Assembly: GCF_000143415.4 (NCBI RefSeq)
Contig: NW_003314274.1
Coordinates: 1,830,213 to 1,894,212, forward strand
DNA: 64,000 bases
Reading direction: 5' to 3'
Origin: Selaginella moellendorffii
Lineage: Eukaryota; Plantae; Lycopodiophyta
A program made the position numbers and the translations under genes. Of this stretch, positions 6,207 to 57,833 are shown piece by piece. Numbering within the stretch: the first letter of the stretch is position 1; each line of letters opens with the position of its first letter. Below the pieces are notes generated by a model, which was not told the DNA's origin, did not search any database, and saw nothing but the letters and a program-made list of their open reading frames with translations.

Positions 6207-8229
6207 ATGTTGGAGAAGGAGCTGCTCAACCAGCTGATCGGCGTGGTGTATGACACGCTGGGTGGGATCCAAATGTCCGGCAGGCACTCGTCCGCGAATT
6301 TCACTACCGCGGTTGTGGTGGGCGTGGCGGTCACCGCCGTCGCGGGGGTCGCGGTCGCCGTCGCGGTTGGGGGCACTGGATTCTTGAGCGATCGGTAAGC
6401 TTTCCTAACAATCCCTCTTCTCGCGAATTTGAGGCAAAATTCCCATCGATCGATGCCTAGAGAATGGAATGGAACTGGATGAATGAATTTCCTGGGATTG
6501 CTTTCCTTGTTCCTGGAGCTCTTTGCTGCCTTTGTTCCCACAGATGTGTGGAGATGTGGCGGTGTTGAGACCACTGGACATGGGGCAAGGCAATGCTCAC
6601 AGAAGAAACCAAGCTTATTGCAAGCCTTACTATTTCTCCTCCAAGAGGTAGTAGTAGCTTCCCCTCCCTCGAATTTTTTCTTCTTGCTTTCTTGTGTGTT
6701 TATTTCTTCTCTAAGCGGCTGGCCATCTTTTTGATCCTTTTGTTGGTTTCTTTCTCTCTTCCAGGGGGCCGTTTCGAAAGCGATGGAGGCGAAGGCGGCA
6801 TCACCCCCTCACCCAGCAGCAATGGGAGGATTTCTTCGGGGATGAAGGCCGTCTCTCGAATAACAGCACCGAAAAGCTCATTCACAAAGTTCGCTGGGGG
6901 GTGAGGTCTTTCTTCTTTTTTTACCAGTTTTTCCAGTGTTTAGAGTTGTCTCAAGGAAGAACTGTGATGTGCGTCGTGACAGGGCATAGAGCCAGGAATT
7001 CGAGCTCAAGCGTGGCCATTTCTGCTTGGAATGTAAGTGTGTTACAAATCCTTTCATACGTTCAAAGTTTCAAAGTTTGTCATACCTTCCATCAGATACG
7101 AGGTTGATAGCACCGAGGCAGAAAGAAAGGAACAAGATGCGAAGCTAAGGTAACGAGCAAGTTTCCGAAGATCCCATACGCAAAAAAACTAAACTTTGCT
7201 TGGAAACTCGCCTGCAGGAAGGAATACGAAAAGATACGAAGCTACTGCCAAGAAATCAAGCAATCACTCACGTCCAGAAGAGAAGGAGAGCATCAACAAG
7301 ATGGCATGGAAGAACAAGCAGAAGAAGAACACAAACTCATGCCATTCTCCGAGAGCCAGATCGAAGCATTCAGCAGCATCAACGACAGCAGCGCGTTCTG
7401 GAAGAAAGGACCCAAGGCAGTGGACGACATAGTTACCTGGCAAAGGATCATCCGCCTGGACGCCGTCCGGATGAACGCCGAGTGGGTTCCATACTCTCCG
7501 TCCCAGGCCAACGTGAGCGACGAGGAGACGTCCAAAGTAGCCCGCAAGGCCGGCCTGTCCGACGACGAGCACCTGGAAACTTGCCGTCGCTACCACGCCG
7601 CCAGGCTCGTCTCCATCCTCGAGGCCTACGCGCTCTACGATCCGGACACGGGCTACTGCCAGGGGATGAGTGACTTGCTCTCGCCGTTCGTCGCGCTCAT
7701 GGACGACGACCACCAGGCCTTCTGGTGCTTCGTGAGCTTCATGAGGACCGCGCGGCACAACTTCCGGCTGGACGAGGTTGGAATCCGGCGGCAGCTAAAC
7801 GGGACCTCGGACATCATCAAGGTGGCAGACCCGGAGCTGTACGAGCACCTGGTGAAGATCAAGGCCGAGGACTGCACCTTCGTGTACCGGATGGTGGTGG
7901 TGCTGTTCCGGAGGGAGCTGACTTTCGAGCAAACGATATGCCTGTGGGAGGTGATATGGGCGGACTCGACGGCAATGAGGACGGGCAAGGGACTGGGAGA
8001 GGCCCAGAAGAAGAAGAAGGCTCCCCCGACTAAGGACTTGCTGCTCTACACCATAGCGGCGGCGGTGTGCCGGAGGAGGAAGTTTATCATGGAGAACTGC
8101 AAAGGGATGGACGAGCTGCTGCGGGAGTGCAATGCCATGGCGGGGAACTTGGACGTGTGGCAAATGCTGGACGACGCTCGGGAGCTTGTGAGTCGAGTGC
8201 ACGGGAGAAGGCCAGAGACGCCTACATGA
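6207..8229 (+). CDS. TBC-domain Rab GTPase-activating protein with N-terminal hydrophobic segment
   Basis: Exons 6207-6394, 6765-6900, 6983-7032, 7096-7149 and 7218-8229 splice in frame. Motifs include GIEPGIRAQAWPFLLG, IIRLDAVR (Arg finger) and GYCQGMSDL (Gln finger). Confidence 0.9.
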
Positions 8230-16021: not shown

Positions 16022-17879
16022 TTACTCCTGTTTGTCCTCCTCTGTATCGTCCAGGCCAAACTTCTTCTCCTTGTCTGGCTTGAGAACAGCCTTTTCGATG
16101 TCAAACGAGTTTTTTAGTGTCCCCGTAGTCAGGCCGACAGCTTCGTCCTCGTCAAACTTCTCGGTGGATTCGTCCGAGTATGCGTAGCTGCGAAAGCACG
16201 GAAGTGTCAATTCGATTTCAATCCGGGAGTTTGTTTTTTGTCTTGATGATTTCATACCGCATTGAGTTTTGTGATGGAGCCCAGAGGACGCAAAGTACGC
16301 AGAGCAGGAGGAACGAGACGACGTTCCAGAACGCCGAGATGACCCACGCGTTTTGCCAGTTCTCGCCGAATGGATCGGAAGCCTTGAAGTACAACTGCAA
16401 TGTAAGGATGATTGTGAGCATGTTTCCAAACAAAACAAGGATGTAAAACAAAAGAAAGAGAAAAAACTAGCCTCGTAGCCAATCCATGCGACGGAGGCTA
16501 TGACCGCCAATGTTAATGAGTTCGTGAAGCGTCTGTAGAGCTCCAGCTTGACAACGAGCTTCCTCGCCTAGATTGACAGCAGAGATCGTCAAAGGATGAA
16601 AGAACAGCAGCTTTGTTCTTACCTGAAGCTTCTCCAAAGTTTTTGAGAGCGAGTTGAAGATCCATAGGATGAAGAACGCGTCCAGTATTGCCACAGGCAG
16701 AACCAGCAGCAGCCTTGTCTTATTTGACATCTCGTCAATCCTCCCAACGTGTTCGACCACGTCCATAGTCTCCAAGGCTGCGAAGTAAGTCGTGCCGAGG
16801 AGCAGAACCTTGGAAGTAAGACCACCTAGCGTTGGACGCACCACACCGTATCCCATCGAAACAACCAGCACCAAAAGCCGAGCGATGGTCTTCTTGAGTG
16901 CACCGATTGTCACAGCCCATATAGTTATACCCATGGGCCTGCCGCCTCGGATGTTAAAGTTGGCGTAGTCGAAGTACCAGAAGGACATCTCGGTCATCCC
17001 AAGCCCAATGACAAGCGTGATCCAGTTTTGAAGCTGCAAGATATCCTTCCAGAACCTCGAGTATTGAAGAAACCATACCAGCCCGAGTGCCAAGTAAGCC
17101 AGTGACATGAACCCGTAGAACGTCATGAGAGCCACCATTCTTCCCGGCAGGTATCCGTGCGGGTTCTTCCACACGGTCTTGCCATCGATCATCAAGCCGT
17201 CGAGCTGAGGATCGCAGTAGACGAAGTAGAGAATGTACATGCCTGACTTTGTGATCTTGACTTCCTCCACTCCCATGGTGGTGGTGAGATCGTTGCCGCG
17301 GAAGAACACATTGATGGCTTTCGGAGATCCCGCGTTCTCGGGGTTGTGACGGAGTATCACCTCTCCCTGGTTGCAGCCAACGTCCCTGGCGAGATCTGGA
17401 GTGCAGCAAAGCGCGAGGTGACCACCGTACAGAGAACCCCCGAGCAAATCTCTGTCCGCAACGTCGAAAACCACAGCTTGGACCAGCCCAGATTTGTGCT
17501 CTGACGCTGCATGCTTGGCAGCGGCTTCTTCCGTGCGAGTGAAAGTCACCGAGTGATCAAACCTGGCACAAACAAAGGAAAAAAAAAGGAACGAAAGCAC
17601 GATGTGAGTATGGACTAGAAAAAAAAACTCCAGGCTTCTTGGAGCTCAATAGTACCTGATGTAAGAACGACCGTTGCCAATCCCAGATCTATTAGCATTC
17701 GACGTGCTCGCATAGATTCCTTCGCTGCCGCCAAAGAAAATGTAGGCATTCCCTTGCCCGACAAAGTGTTCGTGCACGTATTCGTGGACGGACGCATCTG
17801 TGGACCAAATGCAAATGGCCACCACAGCCAGCGCCAGAATCCCGCCCATTCCTCGCAGCCCTAGCTGGAAATCCCCCAT
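16022..17879 (-). CDS. Lung seven-transmembrane receptor family protein (TMEM87/GPR107-like)
   Basis: Signal peptide, LCCTPDL, WKNPHGYLPG, VSMGYGVVRPTL and LWAPSQNSMRYAYS are encoded across several short introns. Confidence 0.9.
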
Positions 17880-18299
17880 CCCTGGGCCGAGAACCGAAGA
17901 TTACCTAGAATTCCAATGCAGATCCCGCTGGATCACGCCCGCATTGCGCGAGAATCCCCGGAATTTCGCGCAGATCTTGCCGATTCACGCCTGCATTGTC
18001 CCCAGGGCGCGACGATCCAGCGATAGACCTTGCCTGGAGCCTGCCGCTCGAGAATTCCTCACGGGAATTCTACCTGGACGACGCCGTGATCATACCGATG
18101 CGCTTGGCATGAACAAGAAAGAAAGAGGGCTGGAAGGAAACACCGACTGTTGTCCACCTAAAGCGTACGAAAGCGAGTGAGATTCGTGGCCAGTGGCCCA
18201 ACATCGTTAGGTGACTGTACGAAAGGGGGTGTATGGTATATATCTGGGGCCCGATATCGAACCACCACCGGCTGGTGTGACATCACCGAGAACACATCT

Positions 18300-18390
18300 G
18301 GACTGTTGGATTTCAACGGCTTAGATCTCTTCCGGCCGAAGTTCCGTTAAAATCCTGTGTTTTACCGGTCCCGTTAAAAAACTCTGTTAT
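18300..18390. promoter_or_regulatory. Cluster of MSA (MYB3R) cores upstream of the orphan coiled-coil gene
   Basis: AACGG at 18315-18319 and CCGTT at 18344-18348 and 18371-18375, with near-matches CTGTT at ~18303 and ~18384. Confidence 0.6.
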
Positions 18391-18506
18391 GTGTGCGCGG
18401 GATTCTTAGGGTTTGGGCGCGGCTTAGCTGGAGCGATCGACTGATCGCTGAGGTTTCGATCGATCAAGAGCCGCATTCTAGGTATCTTGCAAGATTTCTC
18501 ACGGCG

Positions 18507-20067
18507 ATGGATGGAATCGAAGCTGTGTATGGATCTTCCCGCGGAGCTCTTCGAAATCTCACCAATCGGACGAGGCGGCCCGGCCCCCCGGGGGGCCCGA
18601 CGTTCGATCCGTTTTTCTGGGAGGATAATCAGCATCGCGGAGGCGGGGCATGGGTTTCCAGGACGCCGGTGCGTTGGGATCGCGAGGGCGGCGGGATTCA
18701 AGAGATTTTTCCCGCCGGTCCGGTGGGATCTCCGCGAGAGGCCAGTCCTTCTGGCGTCCAGAACCTCATGCTCAATGCCAAGGACAAGGAGGCTTTGCTG
18801 GAAGAGTCGATCAGGCTGAAGCAAGCGATCCACTGCCAGGATTTCTTTCTTCGCCGGGACAAGGTCCACGTTTCAACTGTGGAGATTGAGAATCGGTAGC
18901 TACTTGGAGTTTGGATTTCTTATCTGGCTTTTCTGACGAATCGAGCTTCTATGACAGGAAGCTCGGGTTTGATATCAAAGATATGGAAACGCTAGGAAAC
19001 ATCAAGTCTCCACCCCGTGGAAGAAGCATACGTACCAGACTTAAAGGTAGAAGGAAAATCTAGCGTAGCTCGAGGTTTTTTTCTTTTCATAGAACTTGCA
19101 ATGCTCCTTGTTCTCTTTTTTTTTCTCTCTTACGCAGGACTAAAGATAAGATACGAAGACATGCGAGCTGTGTGCGACGCGCAATTTGACGAGCTATCCA
19201 CGATGCGAAGGGATTCACGGCCAACGGCGATTCAAGTAAGAACGAACTACTACTACTTCAGAACGTTTCAAACTAACCAGAGACATTAGGCTTGTCATAA
19301 AATCTCAGGAAATGGAGATGGACCGAGACGCGCTGCACTCTGAGATTTCCAGGTTGCACAGAGACGTTACCGGGTTGAAAGCAGTCCAAAACGCTCTCAA
19401 ATGCGAGCAGAAAGGCTTGTTTTGCATCAAGGAGAAGGCAGACGAGCTGGAAGAAGTCAACCATACTTTGGAAAAATGCATGGACGTGAGTAAACCAGAT
19501 TCGATCGACTAGGAACACTTCTGATATTCGTTCTATCAGGCCGTAAACAAGGAGCTTGCAAGAACAAGCCACGACATGGTTGTGTTCAACCAGAAAATGA
19601 TCGAATCGGGCCTGGAGGCGAGAAGAAATGCAAAGAGATTCAAAGACTTGGAGGAACACACGGCAGCACTGAAGATCCTTATCGAGAGGGAGAAATCCGA
19701 GAGGATAGATCTGGACAAACAGCTGGTGGGATTGGAGCAGCAGGTCAAAAAGGCCGAGCAGGAGCTAGTTTGCAAAGCAACAACAAAGCCCAAGGACGAA
19801 CCTCTCGCGAGCGCAGCGTCAAAGCAAGGAACCACCGCCGCCACTACTGCTACTGCCGCCAAAGGACTGAAGAAGGCTGCGAGCAAACCACCAACACCAA
19901 CGCCGGGAAAGTTCGATCCGCCGCTCAAATCGAGCAAACCATCGACAGCTCCAGCTCCATCGAGATCCAGAGCCGCGACGACCAAAGCGAGCTCGATCAA
20001 GCCCGCTGCGTCAACCAAAGTTGCTGCTACTAGTACCACTGGAGTTTCCAAAAAGCAACGAACTTGA
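18507..20067 (+). CDS. Uncharacterised coiled-coil protein (about 426 aa) with D-box and basic A/K/P/S/T-rich tail
   Basis: Exons 18507-18895, 18958-19046, 19138-19235, 19309-19485 and 19540-20067 splice in frame (1281 nt) with GT-AG introns. No family was recognised. Confidence 0.8.
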
Positions 20068-20130
20068 CTATGTGTTAGAATGTGAGGTAAATAAGTAAAA
20101 GAAAAGGAACAAATTCTCATCTAAAGTGAT

Positions 20131-21977
20131 TCACCTTCGAATCGTGTTTCTCTGGTCTCGTCTCGCTCCGCCGCTGTCCCTTCGACTGCTACCATCGCGG
20201 TGATCCAAATGTGACCACTCCGACTTGTAGCGGTCCCTGCGAACTGGAACTGGAGACCGGCTTCTCTCTCGATAGTCTCGTCCTCCTCCTCCCCAGCGAG
20301 GAGCATAAGGCGATGGCGGTCGTCTCTCGTCTCTAAAGCCTCCTGGGGGCGGCCCCCTGTTCTCGTGATAGTAGTCTCTTTCCCTCTCCCTGTGTCCACC
20401 ACCATAAAAACTTCCTCCTCTATCGAAGCCTCCTGGTTTATCAAATCTCTCCCTGTCGAATCTTTCGTGCTCGTATCGATGGTCGAAGCCTTCTCGAGAT
20501 CTCACGTCCCTGCCCGGATGGAAGTGCCTGTCCGGGAAGTGGTGCTCCGGGGGACCGAAGTCGTCGAAGGGTCTGCGCTCCCACATCGGTCCCGGCGGCC
20601 CGAATCCACCACCAATCGGTCTGTCCATGCCTACAGGCGGCGGTCCATCGAGGAACGGAGGTGGCAGTGGCCGAAAGTTTGGAGGATCCATCCGGAAGGG
20701 ACTCATGTCTCTCCTGGGCCGGCTGCAGTTGTTACAAGCGGTCCTTCGAGCAAAGTTTAGATTTCCACAGCTGCAGGAAAGAGAGAGAAGCGTAAAGAAC
20801 GAAACAGGAAAGCTTAACTCAGCGAGAGCTTACGTTGGTTCTGTGCATATCCAGTCGCCTTCTCTCGGAGCAACATTGGGATTGTTACGTCCAAAGCCGT
20901 CCGCACGGAAGTCGTCAGAAGGCCCCCGGCCTCGACCAAATCCTCCACCTCGTCCTGGTCCATCGTATCTCCGGCCTCTTCCTCTAAACGCCGCTCTAAA
21001 AGGGAAGTCACTGAACCTTCCTCTGCGAGGACTGAGGCTGGGACTGCGGCTTCGGCTTCCACTTTTCTTACGTGCCAGAGAGACTTGGATTTTGCTTCCT
21101 TTGTATTCATAGCCTGGTGATTGAAAGACATTAGTACAAAACCAACCACTGCCTACATATTCCATACGTACCATCGAACCATTTGATCAATCCCTTTGCA
21201 GCTTTTGGATCCTCCAGAACGACCTCGGCCTCGCAATCGCCACGATATGTCTTGAAAACTTTAATACCTTCTCGACCAACCTATTCAAAACGTTTCATCA
21301 GCTTTATTCACAGCAAAGAAAACTTCTACCTTCGGCTCTCCAGCTTCAGCGAGCAATTCCACCAGATTCTCCTCCATCACTCCGTCGGGAAGATTGGAGA
21401 TGTGGATCATATCTGCAAAAGAACGAAGCGTTATATAGACTCACAAGCCTCCTCAAACAGAAGAATGCAACTTAGAAACACAAATCAGGCACTTACGTGG
21501 AGGAGAAATACAGGACTAATGCAACTTGAAGCGAGAGATCCATACTCACTGGCTTCTAAAATCCAGCTAAAGGCTACAAAAAATCCCACCCCTCCAGTAG
21601 ATAGATTTCCCAGACCCTCCTCTACTCCCGAGCAAGCACACAAGACAACCCACTACTAAGCAGCCCCCGTAGAAACAGTCCTCTAAGCAATCTAAAGCGA
21701 AATTCTAGCCCAAACCTGCATCTTCCCGGAATCGATGCACCTCCCTCCTTTCAACCTCAGATCTCAGAGCACTGTTTAGCGGAGTAGACTCCGGCTGCTG
21801 AGATCCCTTTTCTCGATCCCATTCTCCTTCTTCTTGAGGCACTGCTGCTGCTACTTCTGCGGCTAATCCTTCCGGCTCCGCTGATGCCATACCTTCGTCC
21901 GGTGGCGCCGATCTGGCGAATTCTTCATCAGCTCCGCCGAGAGCGACGGCGCCATCGCCATCGCCTTCTCCTTCCAT
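20131..21977 (-). CDS. RRM plus RanBP2 zinc-finger RNA-binding protein (TAF15/EWS-like) with RS/RGG regions
   Basis: RNP2-like IHISNL, RSRSPSLSPRR, RGG tract, PREGDWIC.EP.CGNLNFARRTACNNC and an RD/RE-rich tail. Confidence 0.85.
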
Positions 21978-44356: not shown

Positions 44357-45979
44357 CTAGTCGCTGTTCTTTGTTCTTGTCCTTCCCGTACTACGGCAGA
44401 AGCAATCCGGTAACGGTAGATTTCTCCCGGTGAAGAGGCTTGAGCTGTGAACTTCCCACATTCGCTGAGCGAGCTCGGCACCGCTAAGTCCCGACGATAC
44501 TGAGGTTGCGAAAGCTTGCCTGTTGAGTACCAGCGTCTTGCCACTGCCGTGCATTGCTCGCATTGCCACCACCATCTTGTCCATGTTTCCGAAGTAAGTA
44601 GCCACGTAAATGTCGCTGTGGACGGCTACGTAGTAGTCCACTGCCGCTTTGCTGTTGCCGTGCAAGCCTTTCAGGGCGTCGGGGCCGAGGATGGCGAGCT
44701 TCCGATATATGTTGGGGTATACTCTGTAAAAGGCCGTCTCCTCGAGGAGGCCGGAGCCGGAGGCGAGATAGATTGGCATGGTGGTGGGAACCCTGAGTGC
44801 CTGGAGGACGAACGCAGCTTCTCCGGGAGTAAGCGGACACTTTCCCCTGTTTCTCCACGATTCCGCGAGGCTGCCGGTGAAAGGTGCTTTGTTGTCGCGA
44901 GCGGCTTCGATGGCGTCTAGCGAGGCCTTCGAGAGGTTGGAATACGTGCACCTGCTGTACGCGATCATGTCCGGCTCAAATCTCAAATGGAGTGCTAGAA
45001 ACGGACGGGGAATCGCGTCCAAGACCGTTTGAGCTGTGTTCTCAAGACGCTGCACGAGACGGAGAGCTTTATAGCAAGCTTGACACCGTGACGCTTTGGC
45101 CCATAGTGGATACCTGCATGCATATACGGGAAGCAGTTGAAGCCTCTCGAGAAGAAATAAAAGAGAAAACCACTCACCTGTCCGATCTTTGGCTTGCCGC
45201 GGGTCGAATGATTACTACTTTCTCTTTGAGTAACACGGGCAAAACAGCCTCAACGTAATCAAAGAGCTTCTTTTTCTGGCAGTCGATCAGCACCGGTTTC
45301 TTGGAAGCGTAAGAGGGAGGAAGCTCCTTTACAAAGCGAACGTAACCCTTCATAGTTTCGATAAAAAAATCCGCATCGAAAATGTCTGAAAAGCCACTAA
45401 ACCATCACACAGTCAGAGATTGATTGTCTGAAAGAGAGAAACTCTAGAAAAACTATGAGTCTTCGTTGCTTTGAGTAGCATACACACCTTGAATCGTTCC
45501 AATACGGAGTTCCTTCAAATTGAGGTAGCAGCAGTGTCGCGTTTAGAAGACGCGCAACTCCAACACCATCACAAAACTGCACGAAACTCGTGAGCTCTCA
45601 ACACGCATTGAAACTGTGACACTTACATCCCTTCGCATTTGATTGAGGCCCCCATTGCAATCCACAATAATGTAGCCATTGCTCACACCGGGAAGAGCTG
45701 CAAGAAAAATCCATCCATTCAACCAAACTTGCACAATCTCACAATCCTACCATGCTGCCGATCATTCCACCACGAGCATTGTTCGAAATCACGCCTAGCT
45801 CTCGGATCACTCCACCAGATCTGATTGTAGGACACTCCGCTGACAAGCAAGAGATCAAAAGATTTCTCCCTCACGAAGAATGCGCATTTCACTTACATCC
45901 TGGATCTCGGAAGCGATCGCAGCGAAGCGATCAAGACGAGCAGCGAGAAGAATCCCGCCACGAGCAGCCCTCGCTTCAT
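44357..45979 (-). CDS. O-fucosyltransferase family protein (DUF246/GT106)
   Basis: N-terminal TM segment, DCNGGLNQMRRDFCDGVGVARLLNATL, FLALHLRFEPDMIAYSRC, GKCPLTP and AAVDYYV. An extra 5' exon up to 46091 is possible. Confidence 0.9.
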
Positions 45980-46434
45980 TGGAGAAATGGTAAATAGTTT
46001 TAGGGCTTACAATAAAGTATAGAACTCGAATCGAACACACGAAGGCATTTCGGCCGGACAGGATCGACGGCTGAGAAAAACGCAATGACATAGCAGGCAG
46101 ATCCTAGCCGTTGGACGCTGACGGGTTTGGTTGACGGCTGGCCTTTGCATTTTGACGGGCAAGCGGCCAGTAGAAGAAACACACGACTGGAAGAAAAGGA
46201 GCTCCATTTCCCAAGGATCATATGGCCGGGCAGCGATCCAGGTAACAGATCACGCTCGGCGGCGCCGGGGGCGGGGCTAGGGCGCTGATCCAGCGCTGCG
46301 TTCGCTCGATCTGACGCTTTAGGGTAGGAAATCATGGCGGAGAGCAGGAATTCGACGATCCAGTGGAATGCCAGCGTCGTAATCCTTCGCACCAGGTTGA
46401 AGTGAGCCATGGAATCACGGCCGCGAGCGTTGGA

Positions 46435-55685: not shown

Positions 55686-56212
55686 AACGAAAAATTAAAA
55701 AGTGAAAGTTTTACGTGCTTTGAAATTCAATGAAAAGGACAAAATGTATGAAAGAAAACAAATTATTTTCTTTTCAAAGCGAGTATTTCTCAGAGTGTTA
55801 AACACTTCGCCCTTGATCGCGTCCTTCTTTCCTTCTTGAGCTTTTGTTGGAGGGAGCGTATCTGTGAGAATTCTCCCCGTGAATCTCCTTCTTCGAAAGC
55901 GAGCTACCAGGATCGACGAGCACTTTTTCCAGAATTGCCATAGCCATCCCTGCCAAGAGGCAAGACAAGATCTTAACAGGATGAAACTCAAAGAAAGTAA
56001 AAAAGAGCTCTGAACGAAAACTTGGGACCTGTGATTGTGGGGGGGGCCTGGGAGGGTGGAACTCCTTCAACCTGCAAAGCAAACACTTGCACACGGCTGT
56101 TAGTACCCGGCGGCCAGCGCCGCTTTATTTTGGCCCATGATCTGGGCCTTACCGCGCCAGAGCATGGACCGCATGCACAAAAACTAAAAAGAAAAAAGAA
56201 ATCAATCAAGAG

Positions 56213-57833
56213 TTACCGAATGCAGCGGCTGTTTAGCGCACTGGATGAGGCTTTCGTCCTGACTGCTGTTGCCTTTGTTGTGTCGGGTGTCCCGAACACC
56301 TGCCAGAAGCGCAAAGTCTCGTCGCCAGCGGCCGATGCCACAGTATAACCATCGGGACTCTGCAAATACAAAGGTATGTCTCAAGCACTTTCCTAAGAAA
56401 GAAAGAAAAACTAGGGAGCAGACCTGTGCCATATGCAGGACCCTCGAGGTGTGCCCGGTCAGCTCCGCCATCTTCACCATCGACGGGTACTTCCAGAGAA
56501 TGAGCTGGTTCTGGCTGAAGCCGTGAGAGCTCAGAAGCTCCCTCTCGTGCTTGCTCCACTGCAATGCGCACACCTGAGAGGCCGTGTCCACGCTTTGGAT
56601 GCAAGCTCCAGTGTGCGTGTTCCAGAACTTGATGCACCGGTCCGCGGTACCTCCTCCGGAAGCCAAGAGATTGCTCTGGAAGGGACACCACGCCAGCGCT
56701 TTCACCGCTGCCTGATGCTCGTCGAGACGGTGGAGATAAGTGCTGTTTCCTCGTGAGGCGGCCGCGGCGGCATCCCAGACGTAGAGAAGGTTGTCGTTGC
56801 CACCGCTCGCTAGCTGCTGTCCGGAGGGTGACCACTTAAGACCGCAAACCTCCTGCTGGTGTGCCGCCATCTTGCCAGTGACATGCTCGCGAATCCTCAC
56901 GTCGTGGTTGAAGATGACGTTGTCGCGACCGCCGGTGCTGAGGATGGGTCCGTTCCAAGCAAGACTTCCAACTCGGGCGGTATGAGCCTTGAGAGATCTC
57001 ACCTGCATGAACAAACCGTTTGGTGAGTACAAATGCTTCCACTCTATACGTGAATCAATCACACGCAAGTAAAGAAGGCAAAGATCTACAGGAAACGAGC
57101 AACGAAAAGTACCTGGCGTAGAGAAAACGCATCCCAGAGTTGAACGTCCGCATTGTTTAACCCGACCGAGATGTGCTTGCCATCCGGCGCCCAGGAAACG
57201 CTGGTGACGGGACCATCATCCTCGCTTACTTGCATGAGCTCTTCGATACCACCGGTGGTAGCGTTCCAGAGATAGACAGTGTGTCCCAAAGCAACAGCGA
57301 GTATGTTGTTCGTTCCCCAGTCCAAAAGGTTGAGATAATAGTCGTCTAGAATCTCTGGCGCATCGAGAGTTCTCTCGGGAGCCTGGAAAGGGTAATTGGA
57401 TCAGCGGAAAAAAAGAAACGATCGAACAAAGAAATCGATGGAAGCTTACCTGAGGGATCTGTCTAAACATCCTCCGGGGCTTGGACGCGCCTGGAGCAGT
57501 GTTCTCGGAGTAGAGCAGCCTCGATTCTCTCTCAAACCCCTCTGGTGGCGGCGGCGGCTTGCTCTTGAAGGCGAGGATCCGGCTCTTCTTCTGGAAAATA
57601 TTGGCGTCGCGCAAGAGATTCTCGGCCAGTTGCTTCTTGTACTCTTCCTGGGAGCAGTCGGATCGAAGCGGCTGCTGCTGGAGCTGCGAATTCTCCTTTC
57701 CAAGAACAAGCATGTTGGCGACGTCGAAATTCATGGCGCTGCGATCCGGAATGAATCGATCGATCTGTGGCAGCTTCTTTGCGGGCGTTGCAGCCGGATC
57801 TTTGCCGCCGTTGGAGCTGATCAGGGCGGCCAT
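56213..57833 (-). CDS. CDC20: CDC20/Fizzy APC/C co-activator
   Basis: C-box DRFIPDR, KEN, RILAFK, WD40 repeats ([32 protein letters not shown]) and terminal IR*, with 3 coding introns. Confidence 0.95.

Follow-up and report, generated by a model that had tools for sequence, protein, structure and literature searches.

The stretch of DNA analyzed here is a 64,000-nt window of the Selaginella moellendorffii genome (assembly GCF_000143415.4, contig NW_003314274.1, positions 1,830,213-1,894,212, forward strand), and all coordinates given below are window positions, counted from its first letter. The subject is a five-exon plus-strand gene that ends at 20067 and has Myb-type sites directly upstream. 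Its conserved reading frame, obtained by joining the exons with a script, encodes 426 amino acids (aa), and its introns are all GT..AG with lengths of 54-91 nt. The locus is a genuine, transcribed S. moellendorffii gene. A preliminary description, made from the letters alone, had presented it as an orphan with a full mitotic signature. Judged by its alignments, the gene is a member of an uncharacterized coiled-coil family and not an orphan, with paralogs in Selaginella and relatives across seed-free land plants and in Ginkgo. The features of the gene are as follows.

18315-18375 (18315 +, 18344 -, 18371 -): three AACGG cores of the Myb or mitosis-specific activator (MSA) type, the first matching YCYAACGGYY at 9 of 10 positions
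18382-18506, plus strand: approximate 5' untranslated region, starting at RNA contig ends, which are not mapped transcription starts
18507-18895, plus strand: coding part of exon 1 (aa 1-129 and two bases; joint 18895/18958 in 4 of 4 runs), a disordered G/P/R-rich head followed by a conserved helix
18540-18566, plus strand: motif RGALRNLTN of the destruction box (D-box) type (RxxLxxxxN), residues 12-20; RGALGNLTN in paralog A only
18606-18653, plus strand: short conserved motifs DPFFWED and GGGAW (in alignments, the family pattern hydrophobic..W-acidic, then GGxW)
18753-18893, plus strand: family signature helix KDKEALLEE...VEIEN, which marks remote relatives in alignments and the profile search
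18958-19046, plus strand: exon 2, a basic linker with SPPR (19007-19018)
19138-19235, plus strand: exon 3, where the second long helix begins
19236-19308, plus strand: intron 3 in the form required by homology
19309-19485, plus strand: exon 4, heptad-periodic coiled coil
19540-19794, plus strand: first 85 aa of exon 5, third long helix or coiled coil (joint 19485/19540)
19795-20067, plus strand: end of exon 5, basic A/K/P/S/T tail with TPGK (19900-19911) and the stop codon (20065-20067)

Most exonic words of the gene were present in 20 of the 24 listed RNA runs (11 studies). Contigs from four RNA runs were aligned to 18000-20500; their 5' ends fall at 18382-18436, and they back the exon joints 18895/18958 (all four runs), 19046/19138 (two runs), and 19485/19540 (two runs). 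The coiled-coil-like region of the preliminary description was borne out by significant heptad periodicity, with 1 of 500 shuffles for exon 4 and 7 of 500 for the initial 85 aa of exon 5. The basic tail was also present, although it measures 90 aa and not the claimed length of about 100 aa; its isoelectric point is 10.97 and 79% of its residues are A, K, P, S, or T.

The relatives of the gene were recognized in several steps of differing reach. An exon 1 word search recovered paralog A only, as a 140-aa S. moellendorffii protein with 55% identity, and other word-based protein searches were swamped by coiled-coil words. The region L001 2860-10475 holds two complete paralogs arranged tail to tail, A (plus strand) and B (minus strand), with the same five exons; the tail ORF (open reading frame) of paralog A exceeds 650 aa and is rich in K/P/S/A/E repeats, and paralog B has a short tail. 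A profile of three exon-1 sequences gave 23 hits among 1.84 billion representatives, and the named hits were from Selaginella, Riccia (1154 aa), Marchantia (Mp2g10870 / MARPO_0023s0053, 373 and 376 aa), Calypogeia, Physcomitrium, and Ginkgo (Gb_29134). The profile search also supplied a fourth Selaginella paralog (C, P0002/P0024), so that the window gene has at least three paralogs (A, B, and C) in S. moellendorffii. The E-values were 8.5e-70 and 2.3e-40 for the Selaginella paralogs, 6.6e-12 for Riccia, 2.3e-7 for Ginkgo Gb_29134, and 3.9e-4 for Marchantia Mapoly0023s0053. No angiosperm was among the named hits in this angiosperm-rich library; 13 of the 23 hits are unnamed Logan/JGI fragments. 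With a four-sequence profile, 8000 candidates were scored and 6 returned, and Sphagnum and further Physcomitrium proteins came from a region-restricted Physcomitrium query. Exon-wise blastp comparison with the orthologs gave E-values as low as 1e-29, and exons 1-5 are collinear with Riccia residues 31-368 and also with the Sphagnum, Marchantia, and Physcomitrium proteins.

The conserved parts of the family are the hydrophobic..W-acidic motif, GGxW, SP[RK], the signature helix (consensus RDKESLLEEIIDLKxAL.DQ..HL...K.........ENRK), and two more long helices. In the AlphaFold2 model of the Sphagnum ortholog, residues 1-127 are disordered and helices span residues 128-187, 199-274, and 281-377 at a predicted local distance difference test (pLDDT) score of ~85-95; the helix of this model that corresponds to the signature helix of the window gene scores 85-90. 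The preliminary description had anticipated an undescribed protein, and the searches agree. No Pfam family was reached at the cut-off by any exon or by the full-length orthologs, and the best matches were generic coiled-coil noise, such as a Nuf2_DHR10-like match of 17.8 bits against a cut-off of 28.4. The best hit of the PDB profile search was the MAD1 coiled coil (E = 0.012), and Foldseek with the Sphagnum model gave nothing at E ≤ 0.001, listing generic rods (vimentin, the MAD1 coiled coil). The ESM Atlas yielded only bacterial coiled-coil look-alikes and was uninformative. Characterized spindle, phragmoplast, and kinetochore families (MAP65, TPX2, NDC80/NUF2, shugoshin, borealin, geminin, and others) produced no Pfam or PDB match above threshold. 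The DUF4201 label that UniProt attaches to the Marchantia protein was not reproduced, PF13870 being unlisted at E ≤ 10 for the Marchantia, Physcomitrium, and Riccia proteins.

The family had been catalogued before. "Group-75" is a candidate spermatogenesis family in Supplementary Table S1 of Koshimizu et al. (bioRxiv 10.1101/2021.07.25.453666), and it is identified with the present family by three common identifiers: Mapoly0023s0053 = MARPO_0023s0053 (P0020), Selaginella 404786 (P0024), and Gb_29134 (P0008). Group-75 comprises four Marchantia genes (Mapoly0023s0053, 0031s0069, 0031s0154, and 0139s0023), four Physcomitrium genes, Chara g36891, nine Selaginella models, and Ginkgo Gb_29134 (Koshimizu et al.); the window gene is probably among the nine Selaginella models. 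All eight bryophyte members (four from Marchantia and four from Physcomitrium) are expressed more strongly in antheridia than in vegetative tissue, with transcripts per million (TPM) rising from 0.6 to 74.6 for Pp3c24_11790, from 0.04 to 59.6 for Pp3c9_23290, and from 1.9 to 41.8 for Mapoly0031s0069 (Koshimizu et al.). The family was one of four final spermatogenesis candidates of that screen and, because of its four copies per species, was "reserved for future analysis"; BLD10 alone was functionally tested (Koshimizu et al.). No later literature naming Group-75 genes was found in main texts or in the supplements of Romani 2026 and Gomes Pereira 2020. The named range, namely liverworts, mosses, Selaginella, and Ginkgo, with Chara added by Koshimizu et al., consists of plants with swimming sperm.

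Three AACGG cores within 61 nt upstream, as listed in the preliminary description, were found. Counted from 18382, where the most 5' of the RNA contigs starts, the cluster is 7-67 nt upstream. The whole window has no other AACGG triplet within 60 nt; when the 53 cores of the window were placed at random, such a triplet arose somewhere in 5.9% of the trials. Sites matching YCYAACGGYY at 9 or more of 10 positions occur upstream of the ATG in the four Selaginella paralogs, at -192, -227, -256, and -370. In 89.5 kb of Selaginella DNA there are 11 such sites, 4 of them at CDC20, which corresponds to 0.049 per 400 nt; at this density, a site less than 400 nt upstream in 4 of 4 paralogs is very unlikely to have arisen by chance. 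Each of the four Selaginella paralogs has thus kept an MSA-type element. The CDC20 gene that the preliminary description had placed in the window with an MSA of its own was confirmed at ~56202-57833 on the minus strand (ATG at 57833), with ORFs containing the C-box, KEN, and WD40 elements. Its start region carries TCCAACGG-type sites, and four of the seven best MSA matches in the window surround it (57016, 57808, 58037, and 58902). The CDC20 sites are an internal positive control, in that MSA-type sites mark a canonical G2/M gene here.

Two more MSA matches of at least 9 of 10 positions were noted, one at 45025 in an O-fucosyltransferase-like ORF (44357-45055, minus strand) and the other near 46108. 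Shared synteny with CDC20 was considered and rejected: a WD40 gene directly upstream of paralog A has no tblastx match to the window CDC20. The divergent neighbor of the gene under study, on the minus strand at 16467-18079, is an ORF resembling lung seven-transmembrane receptors. Its RNA contigs, which end at ~18079, are far deeper than those of the window gene, and the common intergenic region is only ~300 nt.

The motif RGALRNLTN, reported in the preliminary description near the N-terminus, is present there. A D-box motif appeared in 6.8% of exon-wise shuffles anywhere and in 1.0% within the first 30 residues. RGALRNLTN is a good match to the cyclin type, set in a predicted disordered N-terminus (the N-terminal 127 residues of the Sphagnum model have pLDDT < 50), and qualifies as a candidate D-box. 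It has been kept between the window gene and paralog A, though the heads of the two proteins have otherwise diverged. The KEN box is absent from the window protein, and inspection by eye gave no fit for an ABBA motif, a PIP box, or a helix resembling geminin or CM1. Both full cyclin-dependent kinase (CDK) sites of the preliminary description, SPPR (19007) and TPGK (19900), were found together with TPVR (18663), giving three sites against 0.70 expected from shuffles (P = 0.029). These exact sites are not conserved in the family; every member does have SP/TP sites clustered in the head, directly ahead of the helix, and the Ginkgo protein has three full sites. Tail length varies from ~25 to >650 residues among the Selaginella paralogs, and in the bryophyte members a brief basic stretch precedes an aromatic terminus, G[FWR]F[FG]. 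The individual bryophyte C-termini (P0037, P0038, P0049, and P0032) show a lysine-rich run and then GWFG, GFFG, GRFF, or GSFF, endings that Selaginella members do not have. Conservation of the described motifs thus differed from one to the next: the MSA element held in the four Selaginella paralogs, the D-box in paralog A only, and the exact CDK sites and the long tail did not hold. Within the "full mitotic signature", only the promoter element is conserved, and only among the Selaginella paralogs.

The MSA element, the D-box of the subclade, the antheridium-enriched bryophyte members, and the range coinciding with swimming sperm together point to a coiled-coil scaffold timed to G2/M, possibly controlled by the anaphase-promoting complex/cyclosome (APC/C), and tied to the dividing male germ line. 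We give this reading about an even chance of being right. Several observations weigh against it, and they are given here with the rival explanations on which they bear.

Antheridia divide fast, and antheridium enrichment would be expected of any mitotic gene; indeed, AUG7 and a PAKRP2-like kinesin, both known mitotic genes, passed the same antheridium filter (Koshimizu et al.). The pipeline of that study dropped families common to animals or Chlamydomonas and had no flowering-plant screen, so the absence from angiosperms rests on our own profile search, a single search that recognizes mainly one 50-aa helix. The gene might encode a spindle, phragmoplast, or kinetochore protein, as the preliminary description had proposed, with a general mitotic function in all dividing cells; the very high mitotic index of antheridia would explain the enrichment, and angiosperm relatives would have diverged beyond detection. 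An MSA-type element in four paralogs, like that of CDC20, and the combination of D-box, CDK sites, coiled coil, and basic tail in the window gene agree with such a role, and transcripts in so many runs suggest no confinement to a rare cell type. However, the 23 relatives include no named angiosperm, and three Physcomitrium members have 0-0.6 TPM in gametophores, where dividing cells are present, versus 25-75 TPM in antheridia. Similarity to known spindle, kinetochore, or microtubule-associated protein families was likewise lacking in Pfam, PDB, and Foldseek, and the D-box and tail are not conserved family-wide. Given that the moss and liverwort members are enriched in antheridia and that every named member comes from a plant making swimming sperm, the general role was not supported, and we consider it rather unlikely.

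The promoter and the D-box raise a second set of objections. Upstream of the Riccia, Calypogeia, and Marchantia orthologs, whose transcription starts are unmapped, no clear proximal MSA was found. The D-box was not found in paralogs B and C or in the examined relatives from Riccia, Marchantia, Physcomitrium, Sphagnum, and Ginkgo. The DUO1 consensus is RRCSGTT, or AACSGYY on the opposite strand (PMC6290024). AACGGYY fits this consensus too, so the sites may not be MYB3R sites, and sequence alone cannot assign them to MYB3R. If DUO1 reads the AACGG sites, the product could be a structural protein of post-mitotic spermatids, serving the spline and multilayered structure, the basal-body apparatus, or nuclear shaping, with the D-box-like motif incidental or otherwise used. 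In its favor are a phyletic range coinciding with motile sperm and the strong enrichment of the bryophyte members in antheridia, and the DUO1 consensus covers one site per Selaginella paralog promoter as well as AACCGCC at -126 in Marchantia; the A/K/P/S/T tail resembles H1 and could attach to spline microtubules or to sperm chromatin as it condenses. Yet AACSGYY is expected by chance ~0.2-0.5 times per 500 nt and carries little information, whereas the conserved C or CC 5' of AACGG fits the MSA consensus and lies outside the DUO1 motif. Preservation of the D-box in two paralogs with otherwise diverged heads also speaks against this reading, and the tail is no family feature. A post-mitotic structural role appears distinctly unlikely to us.

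The third set concerns the window copy itself. In every spliced contig that crosses intron 3 (X1, X19, and a loose end in X4), splicing joins 19235 to 19290 and not to 19309. The 19290 acceptor lies 19 nt upstream of the conserved one; its use removes 19236-19289, shifts the frame, and brings in a stop codon (19341-19343) once 17 codons have been read. At 19273-19277 there is a CTAAC sequence resembling a branch site. The junction 19235/19309 (..TAIQ/EMEMDRD..) matches the Riccia (..RTR/EVEVERD..) and Marchantia (..CR/EIEFERD..) proteins, and the 426-aa frame is for this reason taken as the conserved one; a single 426-aa ORF is backed by homology, not by the RNA contigs of intron 3. Moreover, where the RNA contigs differ from the window by single bases in coding sequence (18598-19921), eight of the nine changes are non-synonymous, among them F37V, which turns DPFFWED into DPFVWE, the form seen in paralogs. 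This excess fits a fast-evolving reproductive protein equally with relaxed constraint. Because of the frame-breaking acceptor and these differences, it is uncertain whether the sampled tissues make the full protein.

Such data could mean that the window copy is a decaying or mostly unproductive duplicate, the function residing with paralog A or other members. Besides the splice form and the substitutions, this explanation can draw on intron-retaining contigs in X4 and X8 and on the protein collections searched, which yielded no protein from the exact window locus. X4 and X8 have contigs that keep intron 4 (19447-19569), with a 9-nt deletion at 19503, and X8 has additional contigs that keep introns 1-3 (18895-19165); these could be unspliced RNA or DNA carry-over. 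Against decay, the frame is open across five exons and for 233 codons past the alternative stop, both coding indels among accessions (18686 and 19926) are 9 nt long and frame-keeping, and all family motifs are intact. The contigs report the commonest form only, so that a minor or tissue-specific productive isoform could escape. Paralog A (L001 ~6729-6803) has the same two-acceptor layout, with acceptors 20 nt apart, which suggests a maintained feature, and the NCBI models of paralog A are split into 140-aa and 729-aa proteins near the frame break of the window RNA. We regard decay of the window copy as very unlikely; the splice pattern at intron 3 may gate protein production.

Separately, the Calypogeia fissa ortholog (L007 4001-8460) is annotated as two genes, with an N-part of 239 aa and a C-part of 210 aa. 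The split points differ, in that the Calypogeia C-part starts in the exon-2 region and the second model of paralog A at exon 4.

For the G2/M-timed scaffold of the dividing male germ line, the following mechanism may be proposed. The protein of the conserved frame has three parts: a disordered head bearing the motifs, a three-helix heptad rod, and a basic tail that varies between lineages. The conserved MSA-type Myb sites near the transcription start would direct transcription to the G2/M phase, and in the subclade of the window gene and paralog A, the N-terminal D-box may allow APC/C-dependent removal at mitotic exit. The head would be tuned by proline-directed phosphorylation, and while the male germ line divides rapidly, the protein would serve as a scaffold or adaptor in the form of a coiled-coil dimer. 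Its basic tail might anchor it to microtubules or to chromatin, both of which offer a polyanionic surface. The gene structure, the family membership, the motifs with their degree of conservation, and the promoter element common to the paralogs come from the present analysis, and the antheridium enrichment of the bryophyte members comes from Koshimizu et al.; what we infer is the timing in the cell cycle, the targeting by APC/C, what the protein binds, and where it acts.

Among plant divisions, only those of the male germ line are known to build centrioles and centrosome-like poles. A more specific form of the proposal, which we offer as a long shot and hold to be quite unlikely as a whole, is that Group-75 is a plant-specific scaffold of the de novo centriole or centrosome (bicentriole, blepharoplast) of spermatogenous cells. 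In each division, Myb-driven transcription at G2/M would set the amount of protein once, joined in the Selaginella subclade by APC/C destruction, and productive splicing would be confined to the male germ line. If true, such control would parallel, in plants, the way in which the cell cycle licenses centriole assembly factors in animals. The molecular basis of the de novo centrioles, basal bodies, and spline in the swimming sperm of land plants is poorly understood, and testable predictions arise regarding cell-cycle timing, APC/C control, and action in spermatogenous divisions. The present work gives a first description of Group-75, with its signature helix and head motifs, its three-helix rod, the Myb/MSA element of the Selaginella members, and the D-box of the subclade. 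The account of how the family proteins are built, the promoter element conserved in Selaginella, the D-box of the subclade, and the splice form that breaks the frame are new; the family itself had already been catalogued.

Among known systems, the closest is Group-75 itself, to which the window gene is homologous and collinear over all five exons. The account of Koshimizu et al. (bioRxiv 10.1101/2021.07.25.453666) gives membership and expression values without domain, motif, or functional analysis. The family as a whole does not share the D-box, the cluster of three Myb sites, or the basic tail of 90 aa, which belong to the window gene or to its subclade with paralog A. The ciliary coiled-coil family CCDC113/CCDC96 (Pfam DUF4201) enters through the database label, which hints at a flagellar link but is not reproduced by current Pfam.

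In the plant G2/M regulon, MSA elements and MYB3R factors drive CYCB1, KNOLLE, CDC20, and NACK1. The window gene resembles this regulon, a likeness known from sequence, in having YCYAACGGYY-type sites near the transcription start, like the window CDC20; it differs in that its sites fit the DUO1 consensus too and that the bryophyte orthologs examined have no obvious MSA. A second point of reference is the removal of the animal centriole-assembly factors SAS-6 and STIL by APC/C, a destruction that limits centriole assembly factors. BLD10/CEP135 is Group-230 of the same antheridium screen (Koshimizu et al.). Homology to BLD10/CEP135, SAS-6, or STIL was not found; what the family has in common with BLD10/CEP135 is that both are long coiled-coil proteins, enriched in antheridia, of plants that make centrioles de novo. 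Substrates of APC/C that combine an N-terminal D-box, a coiled coil, and a basic lattice-binding region include yeast Fin1, animal NuSAP and HURP, and geminin. The likeness to these proteins is one of architecture only, a relation of sequence or fold not being detected with Pfam, PDB, or Foldseek, and it lies in how the parts are arranged, with the destruction motif placed in a disordered head and accompanied by CDK sites, a dimerizing rod, and a basic tail.

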